64,000 nt of DNA from Lepidodermella squamata. Lineage: Eukaryota > Animalia > Gastrotricha. Location: NCBI GenBank assembly GCA_047495785.1, contig JBLDXI010000025.1, positions 1,364,001-1,428,000 on the forward strand, in the 5' to 3' direction. Shown here piece after piece: positions 39,235 to 62,807 of this stretch; position 1 is the first letter of the stretch, and every line of letters begins with the position of its first letter. The notes beneath the pieces are model-generated. The model had not been told where the DNA came from and made no database searches. It saw nothing but the letters and a program-made list of their open reading frames with translations. A program made the position numbers and the translations under genes.

Positions 39235-39659
39235 AGCTGTAAATATCAAGTGTCAAGGAATGAGACCAAGCTGCATTGTCTCCAACCGTCAATAACCTGT
39301 TGCACTCGCAAAGAATTAACACGGGATGACCACGGCCTATTTCAATCTTTTGCCTCAATTCATCGACCGAGTGCGTTTCAGGTGCTTTTCAGGTGCGAGT
39401 CTTATCGAGTTTTTTGTTTATGATTCAACGCGGAAATTTACCGGTATGGTTGTACTGTTTCCACGTTCAGGAAACGCATTTATCCTGGGTAAATATTAAC
39501 GCGTCCTTCTTTCTGGGGCGTATTTTTACGCATGTCAAAGTAAATAAACATTGTACATGAACTATTTTTCAAAAAAGAGTGTCCTTGATTCGTACATTTT
39601 ATTTTCCATGAAAAATATGCGGAATATTTTTGAGGAAAATATATAAGCCAAAGAAACAG

Positions 39660-40805
39660 TCAAATTTCTTTTCCATCCAGGAACCAAAAATGTTGCCGCA
39701 GTGCCTCCATCTCCATAATTTCTTTGCCAGCCTTATCAGGATTGAGGCTCTTAGCCATGCACATAAGCACCATTCCTTTGAATAGTGTTGGCGAGACCAA
39801 GTTGCATTTGACTATTTGATCGATGAATTCTTCGTCTAGATTTGAAATAACACTGTCCAAAAATATGGTCAAAGCTTCTGCCTTGCCGTGCAAATTAGCG
39901 ACTAAATGCTCAACAGTCGCTTCGAAAAGTGGCAGGAAGTGACTTTTATCTCTCAAGGCAGTGTGAAACGGTAGCACAAGATGCAACCGCCACGACTCTC
40001 CAAGTGGCAAAGGTTTCTCGAAATAAGTGGGCATGAAGTAATTGAGAATAGAATTAAAAAAATTGCTCAGCCGTGCAGTAAACGGAACATGGACGAAAAT
40101 TTGCACTGTCGGGTCTTTCGTGGCAGCAACCATCAGCTCTGAGCCTAGATGCTTGGCTGTACAGACATTGCACGATACGGGAAAATTTTCATTTGGAAAT
40201 AAAAATGACTTTGGGAAGATTTTTCGTAAATAAGACTCCGATTCGGATGCATCCAGCGTTGTCACAAAAACACTGTTGCGAGGTCTAAATTTGAGAATTT
40301 CATGAACGCGGCTAATGTTAACGCCGCAACGTCTCGAAGTCCACATAGCTCTGTACTCGTTCTTGTTCAGAAATAGTTGCTGTGACACGTCATTATCCGC
40401 TGTGGTGAATGCATATATGAATTTAACTCCTTTTCTGCGTAGATCTTCTTCCATCGCCCTGATCAAACAATGCCCAATGCCCCGTCGTCTATGCTGAGAA
40501 TCGACCCTGAGGTTGAAGATGTATGATACTTTTTCATAGACCTGGTTATCTGGGTCGAACAGAACTTGGCGAATGTTGGCAGCCACACCTCCAACGACGC
40601 AGCCGGAACTCCGCTCTTCACAAAGAAGCAAATATGATTCTGCGAACTTGGCGTGACGAGGTGGATCAGCTCCCATACGGAATCTAAGACCCTTCCCCTG
40701 TGGATTTCGTTTTTCTAGGTCCGCAACGCTCTCCAGGTCAGATGAGCTGTTGTTGAATGGCCGTATGATGTAAGGATCACTGTTTGCATTTCGCTGATCG
40801 CCCAT
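39660..40805 (-). CDS. GNAT N-acetyltransferase, HOOKLESS1 (HLS1)-like, intronless (start could be up to 40880)
   Basis: Acetyl-CoA binding motif A LRVDSQHRRRGIG, followed by AMEEDLRRKGVKFIYAFTTADNDVSQQLF. Confidence 0.85.
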   Translation of the reverse strand: MGDQRNANSDPYIIRPFNNSSSDLESVADLEKRNPQGKGLRFRMGADPPRHAKFAESYLLLCEERSSGCVVGGVAANIRQVLFDPDNQVYEKVSYIFNLRVDSQHRRRGIGHCLIRAMEEDLRRKGVKFIYAFTTADNDVSQQLFLNKNEYRAMWTSRRCGVNISRVHEILKFRPRNSVFVTTLDASESESYLRKIFPKSFLFPNENFPVSCNVCTAKHLGSELMVAATKDPTVQIFVHVPFTARLSNFFNSILNYFMPTYFEKPLPLGESWRLHLVLPFHTALRDKSHFLPLFEATVEHLVANLHGKAEALTIFLDSVISNLDEEFIDQIVKCNLVSPTLFKGMVLMCMAKSLNPDKAGKEIMEMEALRQHFWFLDGKEI

Positions 40806-41518
40806 TGTCGGAAAAGAAAAGTTGAGCTGAGTCAATTCGAGCTCCAGAGTGCGCACAGGTATCGCATTACCACGCCCCATGCCGGATTTATTTGCTCTAC
40901 GCTGTTTGCTTGGCTGAAAATGGTATATTTGAAACACTTAACGAGCAACATGACAGAAAAAGTGTTCTCTTTTCAGACATTCCTATTTAGAGGCATCCTT
41001 TGAATCTATTGCTACTTTCCATAATCGTTAACGACACGCCAAAACAACCGCTTAGATGACTCATTCGAGCGTACTTTTGGTAGCCTACCGTAGTAACGAA
41101 GTACGTTAGGCCTATTGAGCACCGAACGTACTTTCCTCATAAAATCTATAAATAGTGTGTTTCGCCATTTTCGCGGCGACAAGGCCAAGGAACGCCCACA
41201 GAAATAATGGAGATCACAAAAATAAGACGCAATTGTATTTATTGCGATGTTCGAAGTTTGATTTTGAAAATTGAAATTAGGGTAGCTATTGCGAGTAAAT
41301 GAAGCTATTGCGGAATACTGAATCTCCATTTCATATTTCCAAATAAAGCCCAGAATTTTTATTGTATAACTTGAGCAATTTCAAAAATATTATTCTTGCT
41401 GCCAGTATACAAGAGGTTGCTAGAGCACGATTCGATACTCGATATACCATTCGAGACATTCACTCTTGAAGAAATCTCTTGAATTTATTAGCTTTCTATA
41501 AAACTAGGAGCATGCATC

Positions 41519-43051
41519 TCACAATTCATTTTTCACGCAATTTTTCGCCCATGTTGTCACGTTAACAATATTATAACCACGATTAGTTAATTGATCGGCG
41601 ATCTTTGATCCCATTGAGTCTGAAAAAGATGTATCTTCCTGAAGTCCTCCAATCTTTGCATCTCCTGCAAACTCCGCTATGTATGGCAGTCGGTAGTGAA
41701 TCATCCTGCCATCGCTCTTCTCATTCACGGTATAGGTCGAACCACCATTGGTTATGTCATGTACCGATAAATAAAGCACATTATCCACTCGAACTATGGT
41801 CTTATGGCGCCCATCCTGCGTTGCATGACTAGCGCGCCACGTCATATCGTTGATGCGGGAGTAAAGCGTTTTGTTACCAGGATTTCGACACCCAGCTGGT
41901 TCCATATCTTTAGAGCCGAAAAACCAGTTTTTGAATACGATTCCGCCAAGGTTCCCACCATTGTCGCTGTTAATTGCCTCTAGATAATCGATTAAATTTG
42001 AAGCTTTCTTTGAGTTGGTCGACGGATATAGCTGAAAGAACTCATCAGCGTCGAAGAACGCAAGCCAGTCAGCCTTACCTGGAAATTGAACAATTGAGCA
42101 ATACCATAAGAAATCATTGCAAATTGAGCACTCACCTTTCAGCCGATACAAACAATCCATTTGGGACACTTGTTGCGACCATTTCCCCAGGTATTCCACA
42201 GGGGCGTAAAAGTAATACGGCGCAACTTGGGCGATTTTCAATTCATTCACGTATACATAGAGGAATTCTTCGAAACCAGTAGATGAAGGCTCATTGACAT
42301 AGATGATGAAGTAATCGAAGCCTACTAATCTGTGGTACTCAATCCACTCCGGAAGCCTGTCCAGTTGATCATTTGCGACGAGGGTGCAAGCTGCCAGGCG
42401 GAATTTGGGCTTCGGAAGTTGGAAGTTGCAAGATAAAAGATCCCGCCCGTGAGGGTTAAAATTCGGCCTATTCGTCGCCGTCAAATTGTAGCGGACACCG
42501 TTTTTGTAGATGTCGTCGATGAATAAAGGCGATCCATCGAGCGGACATTCCAGGGTAAGGGTCCAAGTGTGAAGATCGGCTTCGCCCTTATTATTGGTAA
42601 CTGCGGAGCAAGGTACGCTATGGCCATTGCTCTCTAGCAACCATTGAGTCTTTTCAACCCAAACCTGGTAGTCTTTCATCTTATTCACAGAGGAGACCTT
42701 AACTGATGGGTTTATCGATTCGCACATGAAAACGACGTTGGCAACAGTTCTGCCTTCTAAGCGCCGATAAAATAGGCTCCCTGGTACGGGTAAATGTGGC
42801 TGGGTGATGTATGCACGCCTTGCGTTCGCCTCATTGTTAAAACGGCGCCGACATTCGGCGAAGGACAGTAGTGACCATTGCTCGCGGGCAGCATCCAAGC
42901 TCGTCGCGTTTTTCGAGAGAACCATCCTCTCGCGTGCGATGTTACTTTGAATGTTGCCAAGTTGTATCAGTATACAGATGGCAATAGCCAATACGCATAG
43001 CATTCGGGTTGCAGTTAGACAGCAATATCTAGGCTGCCAATATTGAATCAT
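41519..43051 (-). CDS. Glycosyltransferase family 92 (DUF23) type II membrane protein. Exons 43051-42136, 42078-41519
   Basis: N-terminal TM anchor, LAACT..EWIEYHRLVGFDYFIIY, Q..DCLYR and the WLAFFDADEF (DxD) motif. A 57-bp in-frame GT-AG intron is present. Confidence 0.88.
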   Translation of the reverse strand: MIQYWQPRYCCLTATRMLCVLAIAICILIQLGNIQSNIARERMVLSKNATSLDAAREQWSLLSFAECRRRFNNEANARRAYITQPHLPVPGSLFYRRLEGRTVANVVFMCESINPSVKVSSVNKMKDYQVWVEKTQWLLESNGHSVPCSAVTNNKGEADLHTWTLTLECPLDGSPLFIDDIYKNGVRYNLTATNRPNFNPHGRDLLSCNFQLPKPKFRLAACTLVANDQLDRLPEWIEYHRLVGFDYFIIYVNEPSSTGFEEFLYVYVNELKIAQVAPYYFYAPVEYLGKWSQQVSQMDCLYRLKGECSICNDFLWYCSIVQFPGKADWLAFFDADEFFQLYPSTNSKKASNLIDYLEAINSDNGGNLGGIVFKNWFFGSKDMEPAGCRNPGNKTLYSRINDMTWRASHATQDGRHKTIVRVDNVLYLSVHDITNGGSTYTVNEKSDGRMIHYRLPYIAEFAGDAKIGGLQEDTSFSDSMGSKIADQLTNRGYNIVNVTTWAKNCVKNEL

Positions 43052-52548: not shown

Positions 52549-55500
52549 TTACAAAAAAGCAACGCCCGACCCGCCTCGAGCACTCAGTCGTTGCAGTGCG
52601 ATGATAGGCGCCTCGAAAACAAGTGAAAACAACGTCGCGGCGATGAAAGTAACGCACAACAAGCCGCAGAAGAGCACAGCCATGGTCAGATCAGCGACGT
52701 GAAACACGCGCTGCGAGGTTTGCGAGAAGTACAGCAGGATGAACGGGTGAATTAAATACGCCGAGTACGTGAGTTTCGCCGGCAGGGCCCAACCCGGCCA
52801 GGATAGCACTTTTCCGACCGGCCCGGCGCGGTTCACGACACAGGCGAGCACGAGCCAGCCGAGGGCGGCGCCCCACGCCGGTCTAGCCACTGCATGGTAA
52901 ATAGCGTTCACGATTTTCGGGTTGACGTAGTAGCCGGCGTTGGTTCCGAACTGGCCGTAGACGACCAGGCCCATGGTTGCGATGCATAGAGACCAGAATA
53001 GCGTGGGTAGGTAGGGCCGGGCGAATAAATTGCGGGTTAGGTACAGCGAGTGTTTGACGACAATGTGGCCGAACATGATACCGACTACGTATGGGCCGAG
53101 GCGGCACCATGGTTTCGTGTAAATTGCGTTGAAGTAATCGTGAGGATCAGCGCCAGTCTCCGGGGTGCTGCAATGATTAAAACAACAAAACGTAAAATGA
53201 ATGTAACAAGCACTTGGAGTGTAGACGTAAAATGAATGTACTTGGCAAAAAAGACCCCACACGTTCCAAGTCCACTTAAAATTACACGTGAAATTTTATC
53301 AATGGAAAACCTTCAATCCAATATAAAAAATTAGAAAAAATTAGAAAATTAAAAAATGTTGTAAAATTTCCCAAAAAATTAGCACTCATCAAAGCGAATA
53401 AAACTTCATCAGTAAAACCTGAAAATATGTTGTAGACGTTCAACACATCAATATAGGTAACGTCTTGGTTCAATAAAAAGCGAAAATTGCGACTTCACAC
53501 TGCCGCAGACTGGTTAGAAAATTATATTGTAGCTAATTTCATCATGTATCATTTTTAAATAACTTTACCTCAAAAATGAGTGGCAAAATGAAATTTTCAA
53601 ATTTTTGCAATTTATTATTGCAATATTTGATAGAAGCAGGCTAGCTTTTAGGAAAAATAGCTCCCCGAAGCCACGAAGCTACGCACTTCGTATGAGCTCG
53701 AATATTATGCGAACCAAAAAATCGCAAAAAAAGCTGAAGTTAAATTGTTCCTTATATTCTTCCAGCCAGTGATATGAATTCAGTTGTTTCTGCTTAGAAG
53801 GGCTAACAAAATTGTCATTTGGCTACGAAAATGTTTGAAGTTGAAAGAAGAAGGTTGTGGTTGGATCTGGTTTTAATCAAACCGGAGTAACATAAGGGCT
53901 TTTTCGCCCCATTCGCTAATTTACAGTTGTTTCCCCAAATTTAAGTAAAACCCAGTCCTTAAATCAGAACACCTAAGTACATTCGACATTCGATAATCTG
54001 GTTCGCTTTTTCTCCCAATTAAATTGGTATTTTGTTAGCTTGTAACTTAATTGTTAACTGTCTCTATGGCTCTTTCTATCGGGGCGATAGAGGCGTTGAT
54101 TGAGAAGACGTTAGCCAAAAAAATAGATTCCGTAGTTAGCGCATCAGTCAAAACTAGCCCTGGGCCTCCCCGAAGAAAACTAGTAAAGAGCACACATTTT
54201 TTCTCCAGAAAAAGGCGACACGAGGCTCTATCGGCAAATTTTCGTATATGCAAATAGGAGGCATGCGCTGCTTTGAGATATCAAATCCAATAAAAAAAAT
54301 CTCATCAAATTCACAGTGCTTAACACTTCACAGATTTTAAAGTTCTTCAAGCATTATACAAAAAAAATTTCTCAGAAATTCCAAGTATGCTCTTGTCTTC
54401 AACTCATCCCCTTTACACGCAAGTAAAATTATTAGGCTTACACAGGGGCTGTGGTGTTGCTTGGCATCGCGAACATTGTCGGCGCAACATCGTAGACCAT
54501 AGTAATCGCCATGGTAGAAGCGATTTGCCCAGCCAGCGCTAGAAACGCCGCAGCCCAGCCAACTTTCGGCCGCCAAGCGAACAGAACAACAAGAAACGGC
54601 GCAAACACGAAGAACTGCATGTCATTCGCGAGGTACCATCCCCAGCCAACACAGCCCGTGTTCGAGAAGAAGTTGTTGATGTACAACAAATTGGTCCACC
54701 AGTAGTCACGGCACAGCTCATCAACGCCCTGGAAATAGGTCGGGCCATTGCCGAGATGCGCCCACAGGCCTAAATCGATCAGAATTATAACGACATACGG
54801 CGGGGTGAGGCGAATTAATCGATGTAAATAGACGAAAGGCAGCGTTTTCCAGAACCAAAATCGCGATTTAGTCTGCTGGTTTTTGTGGCTATGGAACAAA
54901 TCGAAGTGTTTCGACAGCGACCAATATGCGAAAAATCCGGATAGGAAAAAGAACGTGTCAACAGCGTACAGCCCGGATAGGACGAATTGAAACGAGAAAC
55001 GCTTCATCCAACTCGAGGCGACTAACAAATTGTCGTAATAGCCAATGTAGAACGCGAAAACGTGGCCGAGAACGACCCAAAACATGCTGAGGGTTCGAAT
55101 TGCGTGCAGCGAGCTGAGATTCGGAATTTGTTGAGACCACGGCGGTAGTGTGCATAGTTTACCCATATTCGTATAGGGCGAGAAGCAGATCAGCACTCGG
55201 GCTAATTTTCGCAGGAATAACGCTGGGCTGATCGAGCTGATTTTGACGCCTGGGCGGTATTGGTGGCCGGTTTGAACGTGGTTAACGAGTTCGGGCCGTT
55301 CAATGCCGTTTCCTAGGCCGTTGCCATGCCCGTTTTGGCCGGCGATCGGGAAGGCTAGACTGGCTGAATCGCCGTCGCAAAGAGCCGCGGCTAGCAGTTC
55401 TTCGTCGATCGTATCGCCGCCGGATCGATGATTTGAGGTGTTGTTATTTCGGTGGCGAGATGAGCCATTTCGAGCCTGGTCGGGTAGGAGATTCGAGTAG

Positions 55501-56842
55501 CCACTGGCGATTGTGGCACCGTCGCCGAAAACCATGTCGGTTACGGAGGAATTGGCGGTCGCTGATTTCGCCCATGAGTTGGCCCAATTGCGGCATCGAA
55601 GGATCACGTCGATTAGGAAACCGAGCAAGACGAAAAAGCCAATGGCACCCATAACTCCGCTGAAAAATTAAGTCAGAATTGTACAAAAATAGTAAAAAAT
55701 TACTATCGTTTGATAATATGATCGATCCAAAATTATCAAAAATATATTCGATAATCATTCGAAATGATCATTCTTGATTTTATTGGAATTCAAATTAATT
55801 TTGAAAAATTAAAATATTGAGAAACTGAATTTCCTAAAAAAATTGGCGAGCTAAATGATAATCGAGCAAGGCGAAATTGTAATAAATCGCAAAAGTCAGA
55901 GAAATTAGGGCTGAGATTTCAATTGTAGACCCGAAAAAAGTGACGCGAGATCTCCTAAAATTAATGAATCTCAGAAAATATTTTCGAACTCACATGGCAA
56001 TGTAGGTATATTGAGTAACGGGCGGATCTTGGAGTTGGCAGTAAGACCATTGGGACGAGTAATAGACTCCAACATTCGAAGGAACTAAGAATAAACATTT
56101 GATTATATTTTAAGGCATTCATTTCTGAATAAAACCTACTCAGAGCAACAAGAATAGCGCCCAATGCATCAACTGAGCAAGTTTTTGGCACGCAAAGGCC
56201 AAGAGTCAGCGCTTCGCCAAACATCATAATTGTTTGAGGCTGAATAGTTTCGTTGGCTTGATTCGTCAGGCCAATGTGGCAATATTGTGGTTCGATTGTC
56301 AGATTTTTCGAAAGCCTTTGCGGCTCGATGTGGGTACATTCATCGAAATCGCCCATCCACATGAGCGCTCCATTCATAATACCAGGCGGCGGTTTGGTCC
56401 ACGCATCCAAATCTAGAAAAAAATCCAATAAATTTATCAAAATGTTGAGCGACAACATATTCAATTTTATTGAAATTAATTTTAAATTTCAACAAAAATT
56501 AAAAATGAAAAATATTTTTCCAAAATACTTACATTGCAAAGCCCATGTTTGCTTCCCTGGATAGACTGAAATTGCGATTTTTTCAAGGCTTTCCAGGCAC
56601 AATTTTTCGTCGTCATTCTTCACCGCAGACCACAGCGATGAAAAATTGACGTCAGGCGTGAGAAGCGGAAAAATTTCAGCATTCAACAACGAATCCTCAG
56701 TCATGGGATTGGCTTGCAGGGTCACATCTCGGCCCAGTACAGCTCGCAAGTACGACGCACTCGGCGATTTGTGTCTCAACGTGTTTTGCGCTGATATTGG
56801 CGCAAGGAAACAAGTCAGCAACAAAAATTTGAACAAAATCAT
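52549..56842 (-). CDS. nrf-6: Nose resistant to fluoxetine-6 / O-acyltransferase-like protein, copy 1. Exons 56842-56533, 56412-56140, 56084-55994, 55659-54442, 53167-52549
   Basis: Signal peptide, NRF domain (DAWTKPPPGI..G..W.GDFDEC, LGLCVP..CS) and acyltransferase-3 motifs (IRTLSMFWVVLGH, VDTFFFLSG, HRLIRLTP, WYLANDMQF, YTKPWCR). Confidence 0.93.
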
Positions 56843-60000: not shown

Positions 60001-62807
60001 TTTTATCTATTCGAGTCTCTTGTTGAATGTCTTGTCGACTCGAGCTCTTTCGATGAATCAATTGCTCACATTCGGACATATTTAGGAGGATATGAATGCT
60101 ATTGCTTGAATTTAAATAATCATACTATCTCAAATTCAATGAATTAACGATATTAAACCGCATAGCCAATATAATCTCACAATTCACTTCTGAATTCTCA
60201 AAACTTGCATTGAAAATTAGACATTTCGAACTAAAACTAGAATATTTTCGAAGTATAATTTTCTTGTCAGAATAATTTTCTTTTCTCAGAAAATTATTTT
60301 ATTCTTTAGAAATTATTTTTTTTAGCAGAAAGACATTTTTCCGCCAGAAAACATATTTTTCCTGCCAGAAAAGAAAAATATTAGCGAAGTTGTCATTCAT
60401 TTCATGGCAACTACTCGAATATTCGAACACGATAATTATACCCGGTGCAACAGATGCTAGTCATTGTGTCCTATTTTTGCGGGGAGGTCATTCAAGAAAA
60501 GGCTAGTACATTCAACCTTTCGACTTACGAACCCGAACAATAAATTCCTTTCGCTCACATTTTCATATAATAAATGTCAGAGCTTAGTTTGTCGCTGGAG
60601 AAAATTTCAATCTACCTAAAATATTGAATCCCATATATTGGATAAAGGCGAGCAGATTCAAAGTTGTATGTATTGTTAGGAATTTTTTATGAGGCGAAGT
60701 CCTGGGATGAAGCGAGGGGCATTCTTGGGCAAAGTATACGATGTTCACCCCGGACAGCGCTAGGGATTTTTCATTCTCAGCTAGCGCGGGGACTTCTTAC
60801 ATATACATTTTTCGGTTACACAATTTGTGTCTTGGGAATCGTTCGAATTAGACAATAGTGTCTAATCACTGACTGATGTGCGGAGAAGTGTATCACGTTA
60901 ATTGGCCATCGCTAACGCCAAGCAATCTTTACCGTTCGGAAACAGAATAGTTACCGGTGTTACCGGTACGGCAGCATTCTGAGAAACAATTTCAAACGGA
61001 AAAATACGTTTCAACGTTTCTACAATTTGGGAAACTTTTCGTAGTTTTACCGTAGTGCTACGGAAAAACGGCATTAGCAATCGTAATTAAAAATAAATTA
61101 AATTTTTCTGAAGAAAAAAATATGGTCCATATTTTCGGGAAAAGCTTGGAATTGGCACCATTATTTCCAATATTGCGATTTTAAAAATTATGGCTTAGTA
61201 GGAGAAAATCTCCGCAATTTAATTCAAATTTACATTAAGTTGCTGCTCAGTAATATGAGATTACTTGGGTTCTTCCAAGTCTCAATACAATTTCTAATTT
61301 CGACCACAAATTTTCCCAAGCATAGAAACTGTAATGAAAATGAATAAATTAGAAAATGAAATTGATTAGCAGCAAATTATGCATGATAAATTGGCCAAGA
61401 AAATGCTCTTTCCAACACCTCTCAATACTAATACTTTAATGTTCTGATGGTAATAATAACAATAATGATAGCTAAACAAACCAATAGTAATCAGCGCTAG
61501 CTGGAAACGATTCTGACAGCAGCGTTACATTGCCATACGCTTGAATGTCTGCGAACAAAAGAGAAAAAAAACCACCGATTTTAATTGACAGGTTAACTAC
61601 TACAACTACTTACCCTGCATATCAGGCAGCAGCGTTGAAGGCAGGCGGAATACAACCGTCAAAACGGCGGCAATCAACGCTTGTAACAACAGCACGCCCA
61701 GCGTCAAATACACAGCAACATTTCCCCAGCGTTGAAACGCGAAAATGGCGAAGGGCGCCGCTAAACTCAGCTGCATATCAACGGCCAAGTACCACGTCCA
61801 GCCGACGCACATGCGCGTTGAATGCACCAAATTGTTGACGTACAACACGTTTGTCCACCAATTCTCAGCGCAGTACTCGTCCAAGCCCTGGTAGTACCAC
61901 GGGCCGTTGCCCAGATACGGCCACAGGCACAGGCTTATCAGAATTACGACGAAAAGCGGCGGGGTTAATCGGATAAATCGGTTGAAGTAAATGATGGGTA
62001 GTGACTTTAAAAAACTCTGTTTTGGGTCTGCGTAGAATTTCAACGTGTTAGCTAGCGTCCAGTACGATAGGAAACCGGATAGGAAGAAGAACGTATCGAC
62101 GCCTAAAACACTTCCGAGGACGATTTGATGGCCGAGCGATTTCCTCATATCGAAAACGGTCTGCAAATTATCGAACCCGATTTGGAGGAAAAAGTAGCAG
62201 TGGGCTAGAACGACCCAGCCGAGGCTCAGGACTCGCAGCCCGTTCAGACATTTCAAACTATCCGATGATTCAGTTTTAACCGGGCTATTAACCGTGAAAA
62301 GTTTGCGTAAATTCGTGTAAAGCGAAAAGCAGACGATGAAACGGAACAACGCGGCGAATCGGTGTATAGACGATGAGGGTACTGAGCTGAGGGACCGTGA
62401 TACTTTATCGTCGCCGGTGCTATCTTGCGGTGTTATCATCGATTCGCGTAATGTAACAACTTGTGTCAACATGATAACGTTTGTTGCGTGTTGTTGTTGC
62501 GGCGTCGACGGCGGCGGTGTTACAATTTCTCCGGCCGTTTGAGATATAGCCGAATTCAGCGCGCGGCTTTCTCGAATTTGAATTGTTACGTCGAAAATTG
62601 TGGCGAAAATCACCAGAAAGCCCCAAATTGCCAAGAAAATTCTGAAAAAATCGGCTTATTATTGCCGTTTCGGATATCGATAGAAATCATACATTGCGGA
62701 TTTTGCTTTCCAGTCAAGGGGTATTTCATTTTCTTGGCACTGGGTCGCATGAGGCGCGAGGTGGATATCCTTCAAAATCGGGTACTGAATTCGGGCTTGC
62801 GGCAGCG
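57031..62807 (-). CDS. nrf-6: NRF-6/O-acyltransferase-like protein, copy 2 (5' exons lie outside the window). Exons 62807-62693, 62641-61614, ~59036-58649, 57285-57031
   Basis: GLRVLSLGWVVLAH, VDTFFFLSG, NRFIRLTP, WYLAVDMQL, YIKP, LAYSAYLVHP. One junction is phase-discordant at its best splice sites. Confidence 0.85.
59170..59720 (+). mobile_element. Decayed MULE transposase fragment
   Basis: RFMCYFPLVYNLK and EFKDYFQAT*..WFEG..STNNG..ANSVLK motifs, with stops and frameshifts. Confidence 0.6.

Follow-up and report, generated by a model that had tools for sequence, protein, structure and literature searches.

The window analyzed here, a stretch of 64,000 nucleotides from the gastrotrich Lepidodermella squamata (assembly GCA_047495785.1, contig JBLDXI010000025.1, positions 1,364,001 to 1,428,000 of the forward strand), carries a gene for a protein that is related to the plant protein HOOKLESS1 (HLS1) and contains a GNAT acetyltransferase domain (Pfam PF00583, residues 54-145, E 1.1e-12). 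Its open frame runs uninterrupted from 40937 to 39660 on the minus strand (Table 1), and translation from the ATG at 40805 yields 381 amino acids (aa), a start and length that are common to all paralogs in the alignment. The intronless GNAT of ~380 aa described in an earlier note on this DNA is thus confirmed as an intact ORF with a single exon. Upstream of a second in-frame ATG at 40880, the motif TTTTCAG (40914-40920, minus strand) represents a candidate splice acceptor. The same note had placed the gene directly upstream of CTNS-CBS, which is correct, as the cystinosin ATG lies ~420 bp downstream on the same strand. It had also described the gene as intronless among intron-rich neighbors. 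This is true with respect to the downstream cystinosin and CBS genes, which are both split by introns, but not for the upstream GT92 gene (510 aa) and the SLC20 gene (771 aa), each of which consists of one open reading frame (ORF).

Table 1. Coordinates of the HLS1-like gene, its predicted parts, and other features of the window.
Feature	Position	Strand	Evidence
HLS1-like coding sequence, predicted tandem-GNAT acetyltransferase, single exon, 381 aa plus stop	39660..40805	minus	ORF list, Pfam GNAT match, start shared by paralogs, AlphaFold2 model
N-terminal lobe, residues 12-170, canonical GNAT, predicted to bind acetyl-CoA	40296..40772	minus	PF00583, secondary structure of the model, alignment with single-GNAT PDB chains
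Motif A HRRRGIG, residues 105-111, predicted R-x-x-G-x-G loop for acetyl-CoA pyrophosphate binding	40473..40493	minus	Alignments
C-terminal lobe, residues 171-381, GNAT-like fold that lacks motif A, presumably acceptor-binding	39663..40295	minus	Model, fold matches to tandem GNATs and N-myristoyltransferase
Conserved C-terminal end F-L-D-G-K-E-I-COOH, residues 375-381	39663..39683	minus	Alignments
Alternative in-frame ATG, putative start (+25 residues)	40878..40880	minus	Sequence read directly
AATAAA, likely polyadenylation signal ~60 nt past the stop	39598..39603	minus	Sequence read directly
Copy of a dispersed repeat (~135-150 bp) located between the GT92 and HLS1-like genes	41024..41157		Read-depth spike
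GT92 gene, single exon	41519..43051	minus	PF01697, E 1e-17
Acyl_transf_3 ORF (NRF-6-type membrane acyltransferase)	52549..53262	minus	
Acyl_transf_3 ORF (NRF-6-type membrane acyltransferase)	54438..55652	minus	
Acyl_transf_3 ORF (NRF-6-type membrane acyltransferase)	61606..62634	minus	

The similarity to plant HLS1 reaches far past the GNAT domain, as the earlier note had claimed for the region beyond motif A. A profile-profile comparison (hhalign) of 24 animal-type proteins with eight plant HLS1 proteins gave a probability of 99.8% and an E value of 3.6e-29 over 288 columns, extending to residue ~301, which is well outside what chance would produce. All segments quoted in that note were located in the protein (IRPF 14-17, DLESVADLE 23-31, GADP 45-48, YIFNLRV 95-101, HRRRGIG 105-111, AMEE 117-120, DN..S 137-141, VTTLDASESE 181-190, and FLFP 201-204), and every one of them aligns with the corresponding segment of the plant HLS1 consensus. 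Motif A, HRRRGIG, matches the plant HRRLGIG. The last ~80 residues fall outside the hhalign alignment, and the MAFFT alignment of this part is loose. In AtHLS1, the positions L327 and E346 are the sites of the hls1-6 and hls1-1 mutations, respectively (PMC10133230). The joint alignment of animal, plant, protist, and prokaryotic relatives shows that in each group most chains terminate at almost the same point, with a common C-terminal end, F-x-D-[GP]-[KR]-[ED]-x, in which D377 is nearly invariant; a K-x-L motif is also shared by the groups. R107 and G109 are invariant in this cross-kingdom alignment, and among the gene copies E119 is always kept and Y131 and N138 are kept in nearly all. Identity to the plant proteins in the joint alignment amounts to 18-21%. 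A sequence-feature search of the ESM Atlas returned Streptophyta clusters of 379-411 aa as nearest neighbors (score 0.97), and the C-terminal half alone retrieved weak leads, namely Bacteroidota hypothetical proteins (0.91) and the C-terminal domain of fungal LYC1 (0.87). The NCBIfam scan of the protein yielded generic GNAT matches only, all below threshold. The window protein is thus homologous to the plant HLS1 family over its full length and is more than a GNAT domain.

An AlphaFold2 model built with the alignment of the 24 animal-type proteins (mean predicted local distance difference test score 92, predicted template modeling score 0.88) consists of two alpha/beta lobes. In a fold search of the ESM Atlas, the best match to this model was a Streptophyta HLS1-like cluster (template modeling score [TM] 0.82, 355 residues, root-mean-square deviation [rmsd] 3.0), followed by clusters of Bathyarchaeota, haptophytes, Bacteroidota, and Chloroflexota (TM 0.70-0.75). 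Among solved structures, the best match over the whole chain is N-myristoyltransferase (NMT; Foldseek TM 0.52-0.56; Z score 20.1 over 289 residues, rmsd 4.2). The next matches in the PDB, with Z scores of 16.6-18.9, are the tandem GNATs 4zm6 (glucosamine N-acetyltransferase region), 7q3a (MAB_4324), 2wpw, 9emd, 5kf1, and Eis-like proteins, while chains with a single GNAT fit the N-terminal lobe at Z 12-13.6. As modeled, the fold is that of a tandem GNAT of the NMT-like type. These structural matches, with NMTs at the top and 9emd at Z 17.1, might suggest that the protein is a fast-evolving offshoot of a standard animal tandem GNAT, namely of either NMT or histidine N-acetyltransferase (NAT16). 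However, identity in the fold alignments is as low as 8-13%, and the plant HLS1-like model fits far better than any of these structures. In Pfam searches with E values up to 0.1, the C-terminal lobe remained unmatched and no NMT family was hit. PDB sequence profile searches, started from either the animal or the plant alignment, retrieved generic GNATs only and matched neither NMT nor 9emd. Such an offshoot is therefore highly improbable.

By analogy with NMT and other tandem GNATs, the N-terminal lobe with its R106-x-x-G109-x-G111 loop would bind acetyl-CoA and perform the acyl transfer, and the C-terminal lobe would form the acceptor pocket. The C-terminal lobe is devoid of motif A and has diverged faster than the N-terminal lobe among the paralogs (mean identity 29% vs. 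37%), which fits an acceptor-binding role as in tandem GNATs. The strictly positioned tail at the C-terminus, F-x-D-G-K-E-I-COOH, is likely to lie against the active site. NMT uses its terminal carboxylate in catalysis; that the C-terminus of the window protein is employed in the same manner is only a hypothesis. The catalytic activity and the roles of the C-terminal lobe and tail are predictions throughout. No signal peptide or membrane segment was apparent on reading the sequence, although no predictor was applied, and the enzyme is thus expected to be soluble and intracellular. The product is best explained as a cytosolic, acetyl-CoA-dependent N-acyltransferase. Small amines or the N-termini of peptides are the substrates of most tandem GNATs with a similar structure. 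For AtHLS1, acetylation of histone H3 and of ATG18a has been reported (PMC12146776).

The gene is not a lone oddity, since the genome (121.2 Mb searched, 151 contigs) contains at least 15 intact, full-length copies without internal stops, the others being 33-43% identical to the window protein. All copies are intronless. The window copy, 1.40 Mb into its contig (C25), is the only one there; two copies reside on another contig (C19, at 498 and 805 kb), and twelve on a third (C3), where one is found at 1.086 Mb and the others at 1.131-1.178 Mb, all on one strand. Three degraded copies are also present, all of them inside this C3 array (1086082-1177528, loci L011-L017 and L002-L008), which is flanked by a gene for a UAA transporter (1080 kb) on one side and by duplicated 5'-nucleotidase genes (1178.7-1184.7 kb) on the other. 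The array is free of tRNA genes. A metagenome scaffold (ENA ERZ23486764, 29 kb; L009) carries nine tandem copies between eukaryotic genes, among them a 5'-nucleotidase with 69-80% identity to those at C3:1178.7-1184.7 kb and a UAA transporter with 75% identity to that at C3:1080.1 kb. The matching flanks identify the two arrays as orthologous loci in two related species, the block spanning ~17 kb in the metagenome species and ~105 kb in L. squamata. The related species has dispersed copies too, located beside Sec1/Brix and beside a kinase gene. In the phylogenetic tree the copies of the two species interleave, so that at least four gene lineages must be older than the split of these species. 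The window gene is the sister of an array member (C3:1174019-1175155; support 96/86) and is a dispersed copy of this lineage-specific expansion. Of the 15 intact copies, the window copy alone carries a plant-like RGIG loop. In ten of them, the first glycine of motif A (G109) is replaced by N or K, giving loops such as R-R-A-N-L-A or R-R-A-K-V-A in place of R-x-x-G-x-G/A (for example, L016:2170-3273 and L011:6082-7236). With a ratio of non-synonymous to synonymous substitution rates (dN/dS) of ~0.2, this subclade appears to be still functional, as judged from the sequences. The genome also encodes a short GNAT of ~151 aa in two identical-scoring copies (C28:1438589-1438885 and C33:603287-603583), which does not belong to the HLS1-like family (31% identity over 100 aa) and has no relationship to it.

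The ORF is a real gene that is selectively maintained under purifying selection. Across ten paralog pairs, dN/dS ranges from 0.09 to 0.25, and six of the ten single-nucleotide polymorphisms (SNPs) observed in the window gene in a DNA sequencing run are synonymous, the other four being non-synonymous. The composition of the family is host-like (GC content 0.445, GC at third codon positions 0.457, correlation of relative synonymous codon usage with host ORFs r = 0.81) and shows no compositional trace of transfer. A gene of foreign appearance may also be a contaminant or lie on a chimeric contig, in particular since the DNA for the published L. squamata assembly had been amplified by multiple displacement and its cleaning required the removal of 370 non-metazoan contigs (PMC11660948). 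The presence of Wnt genes shows that the genome is an animal's, and the HLS1-like gene is physically integrated in it. The gene sits deep inside its contig between split animal genes, and contigs from the DNA run cover it and its neighbors evenly, without joints, at a depth of 50-100 and with allelic SNPs. Moreover, paralogs occur on three contigs, and a syntenic array with flanking genes of animal type is present in a metagenome that was assembled independently. Given the even depth, the host-like codon usage, and the animal neighbors, contamination or chimerism is very unlikely and is the least probable of all explanations considered here.

The distribution of homologs across the tree of life is patchy. 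An exhaustive single-sequence phmmer search against 1.84 billion protein representatives returned only 66 matches, and the source names of 30 of these were looked up. Proteins from metagenomes came first, followed by land plants as the best named matches, several of which are annotated as 'probable N-acetyltransferase HLS1', and then by the euglenid Entosiphon, the diplonemid Rhynchopus, the apusomonad Thecamonas, and metagenome-assembled genomes of Chloroflexi and Bathyarchaeota. The microbial relatives mentioned in the earlier note thus exist. The family also occurs in haptophytes and other compact protist genomes, and two matches of the protist clade (see below) stem from compact eukaryotic genomes that are not of animals. 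One such relative is located on two ENA metagenome contigs (L028 and L029, 42 and 233 kb) of an extremely compact eukaryotic genome in which genes are a few bases apart and introns are not obvious. No animal was found among the 30 looked-up matches or among the ESM Atlas neighbors. Within this scope, the protein is not a standard metazoan N-acetyltransferase, in agreement with the earlier note, and the widespread metazoan orthologs that would have spoken against its proposal did not appear. A rough alien index is at least 16 (best named non-animal match 7.2e-11, no animal at 1e-3) and would still be at least 10 if one match whose name was not looked up (1.3e-6) were from an animal. A search of viral contigs with the single protein found nothing; this is a weak negative result, which leaves a giant-virus source without support. 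In those parts of the literature on HLS1 and on gastrotrich genomes that were available to us, an animal HLS1 homolog is not mentioned. An origin of HLS1 in embryophytes and its absence from algae were the conclusions of a study published in 2023 (PMC10133230).

In a maximum-likelihood tree (51 rows, 373 columns, LG+C20; support as ultrafast bootstrap/Shimodaira-Hasegawa-like approximate likelihood ratio test), the homologs form four clades: animals (100/100), land plants (100/100), prokaryotes (97/90), and protists (100/98). Prokaryotes and protists group together with 90/79, and the branching order among the four clades is weak. The animal clade is placed outside the plant, prokaryote, and protist clades and is not nested in any of them as a potential donor. 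Its profile-profile scores are 226 to plants, 229 to prokaryotes, and 224 to protists, while these three clades are somewhat closer to each other (250-268). The window protein thus falls outside the plants and is no closer to them than to the prokaryotic and protist relatives, so that the designation 'HLS1-like' is valid only at the level of the superfamily. A particular affinity to plants, as suggested in the earlier note, was not recovered. A recent or plant-derived transfer of an HLS1 gene would agree with the Streptophyta being the best named matches and the best ESM Atlas clusters, and with the plant-like RGIG loop of the window copy. However, the plants form an exclusive clade without any animal sequence branching inside it, the identity to plant proteins is low, and by profile comparison plants are as distant as prokaryotes and protists. 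In addition, several copies of the gene existed before the two animal species separated, and a compositional anomaly is lacking. A plant donor is not supported, and such a transfer is very improbable.

A more serious alternative is vertical inheritance, according to which a gene family of early eukaryotes was kept and expanded in gastrotrichs but lost in fungi, choanoflagellates, and nearly all other animals. The occurrence of members in land plants, Euglenozoa, an apusomonad, haptophytes, and other compact protist genomes would be in line with this scenario, as would the fully host-like composition and the several old paralog lineages. However, it requires a dozen or more independent losses. 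It also predicts a grouping of the animal proteins with Thecamonas, which was rejected in an approximately unbiased (AU) test (p 0.019). A hydrophobic insertion of ~50 aa between the two lobes, found in every aligned member of the protist clade, is missing from the animal proteins as it is from those of plants and prokaryotes. Furthermore, every animal copy is intronless, and no animal occurs among the named matches. Vertical retention is on balance less likely than an acquisition. The lack of an animal match, the intronless copies, and the dozen or more losses that would otherwise be needed favor an ancient acquisition instead. Since no other animal was found to possess the gene and the animal proteins do not group with the sampled close relative of animals, a single ancient acquisition from a non-animal source is the most likely explanation, to which we assign a probability of roughly 0.55-0.6. 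The capture would have occurred in the gastrotrich lineage, where the gene would then have been ameliorated and duplicated and the copies would have diverged in acceptor specificity. The chances are about even for a fuller version of this scenario, in which a gastrotrich ancestor captured a tandem-GNAT gene from a non-animal, possibly prokaryotic donor and expanded it to at least 15 copies with diverging acceptor pockets, and in which land plants may have captured HLS1 independently. The horizontal transfer proposed in the earlier note thus stays a candidate. Such a transfer would be ancient, its donor cannot be named, the composition retains no vestige of it, and the deep tree is weak.

Several observations weigh against an ancient acquisition of a CoA-dependent enzyme. 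The profile scores link the animal clade equally to each of the other three clades, none of which can be named as the donor. The presence of the family in several eukaryotic supergroups makes descent from early eukaryotes with many losses possible, and a grouping of the animal clade with the whole protist clade, which vertical inheritance could accommodate, was not rejected in the AU test (p 0.18). The Thecamonas grouping was selected for testing after the tree had been seen, even though it is implied by the species tree. The absence from other animals was judged from one search with a single sequence, in which source names were looked up for 30 of the 66 matches, and divergent animal relatives could have been missed. 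Finally, the loss of G109 in two thirds of the intact copies implies that some members of the family may have an altered mode of CoA binding or may not bind CoA.

Further features of the window bear less directly on the HLS1-like gene. Besides those mentioned, the window contains genes for an fn3 protein and for NRF-6-type acyltransferases. The latter are represented by three Acyl_transf_3 ORFs, which look like a local cluster of paralogs or of exons. The GT92 gene is directly upstream of the HLS1-like gene on the same strand, with an AATAAA ~30 nt past its stop. The spacer between these two genes harbors a repeat that stands out by a DNA depth of 1319, compared to 50-100 in its surroundings. 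A first look at the genome gave 154 candidate copies of this repeat, and scoring of 40 of them gave 42 matching stretches with 75-94% identity. An Rfam scan of the spacer including the repeat produced no match. The repeat is probably an element similar to a miniature inverted-repeat transposable element or a short interspersed nuclear element.

HLS1 is a much-studied regulator of plant development whose biochemical role is still debated. The proteins described here are a new, expanded animal clade within a known enzyme superfamily rather than a new kind of system. Two-lobed HLS1-type enzymes occur in prokaryotes, in several groups of protists, and in a single lineage of animals, in which they are under selection and have strongly expanded. 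The comparative basis for working out the role of this fold is thereby widened, and testable leads are offered by the conserved tail at the C-terminus and by the resemblance to the NMT architecture. The family is also a further, well-anchored case among the few candidate foreign gene families of microscopic spiralian animals. If the proposed scenario is true, an animal reuses an enzyme of the type known from a plant hormone pathway for chemistry of its own, for example to acetylate proteins, or amines from the diet or the environment. The view that HLS1 originated in embryophytes, as expressed in the 2023 study (PMC10133230), would then be too narrow.

Like NMT, the HLS1-like proteins would carry two GNAT folds on a single polypeptide, the first of which would hold the acyl-CoA site. 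The C-terminal end matters in NMT, and the HLS1-like family has a strictly conserved end. However, identity to NMT is 8-11%, and a relationship is not discernible at the sequence level. The small-molecule tandem GNATs 5kf1, 4zm6 (glucosamine), 9emd (histidine), 2wpw (CBG, clavulanate pathway), and 7q3a (MAB_4324) share the architecture over 278-287 residues, and 5kf1 also shows a weak sequence match to the N-terminal lobe. In contrast to the relation with HLS1 proteins, this resemblance is confined to the fold (10-15% identity), and the substrates of these enzymes cannot be transferred to the window protein. To our knowledge, no member of the HLS1-like family has a solved structure. Much closer are GNATs of 320-360 aa from Chloroflexota, Bathyarchaeota, and Bacteroidota, which are shorter than the animal proteins but homologous over the full length (E ~1e-30, 313 columns). 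These prokaryotic proteins and the protist relatives from Thecamonas, Entosiphon, and Rhynchopus resemble the animal proteins in fold and in the C-terminal end, and the protist forms differ by the hydrophobic insertion between the lobes. We know of no characterized enzyme among either of these groups. Unlike the plant genes, the animal genes are intronless and arranged as multiple copies in tandem arrays, and their products are a separate deep clade rather than orthologs of AtHLS1. Nevertheless, plant HLS1 (~380-410 aa) is similar in its N-terminal GNAT with the H-R-R-x-G-I-G loop, in the collinear conserved segments that continue through the post-GNAT region to residue ~300, in the same predicted fold, and in sharing both the K-x-L motif and a C-terminal end of the form F-x-D-[GP]-[KR]-[ED].

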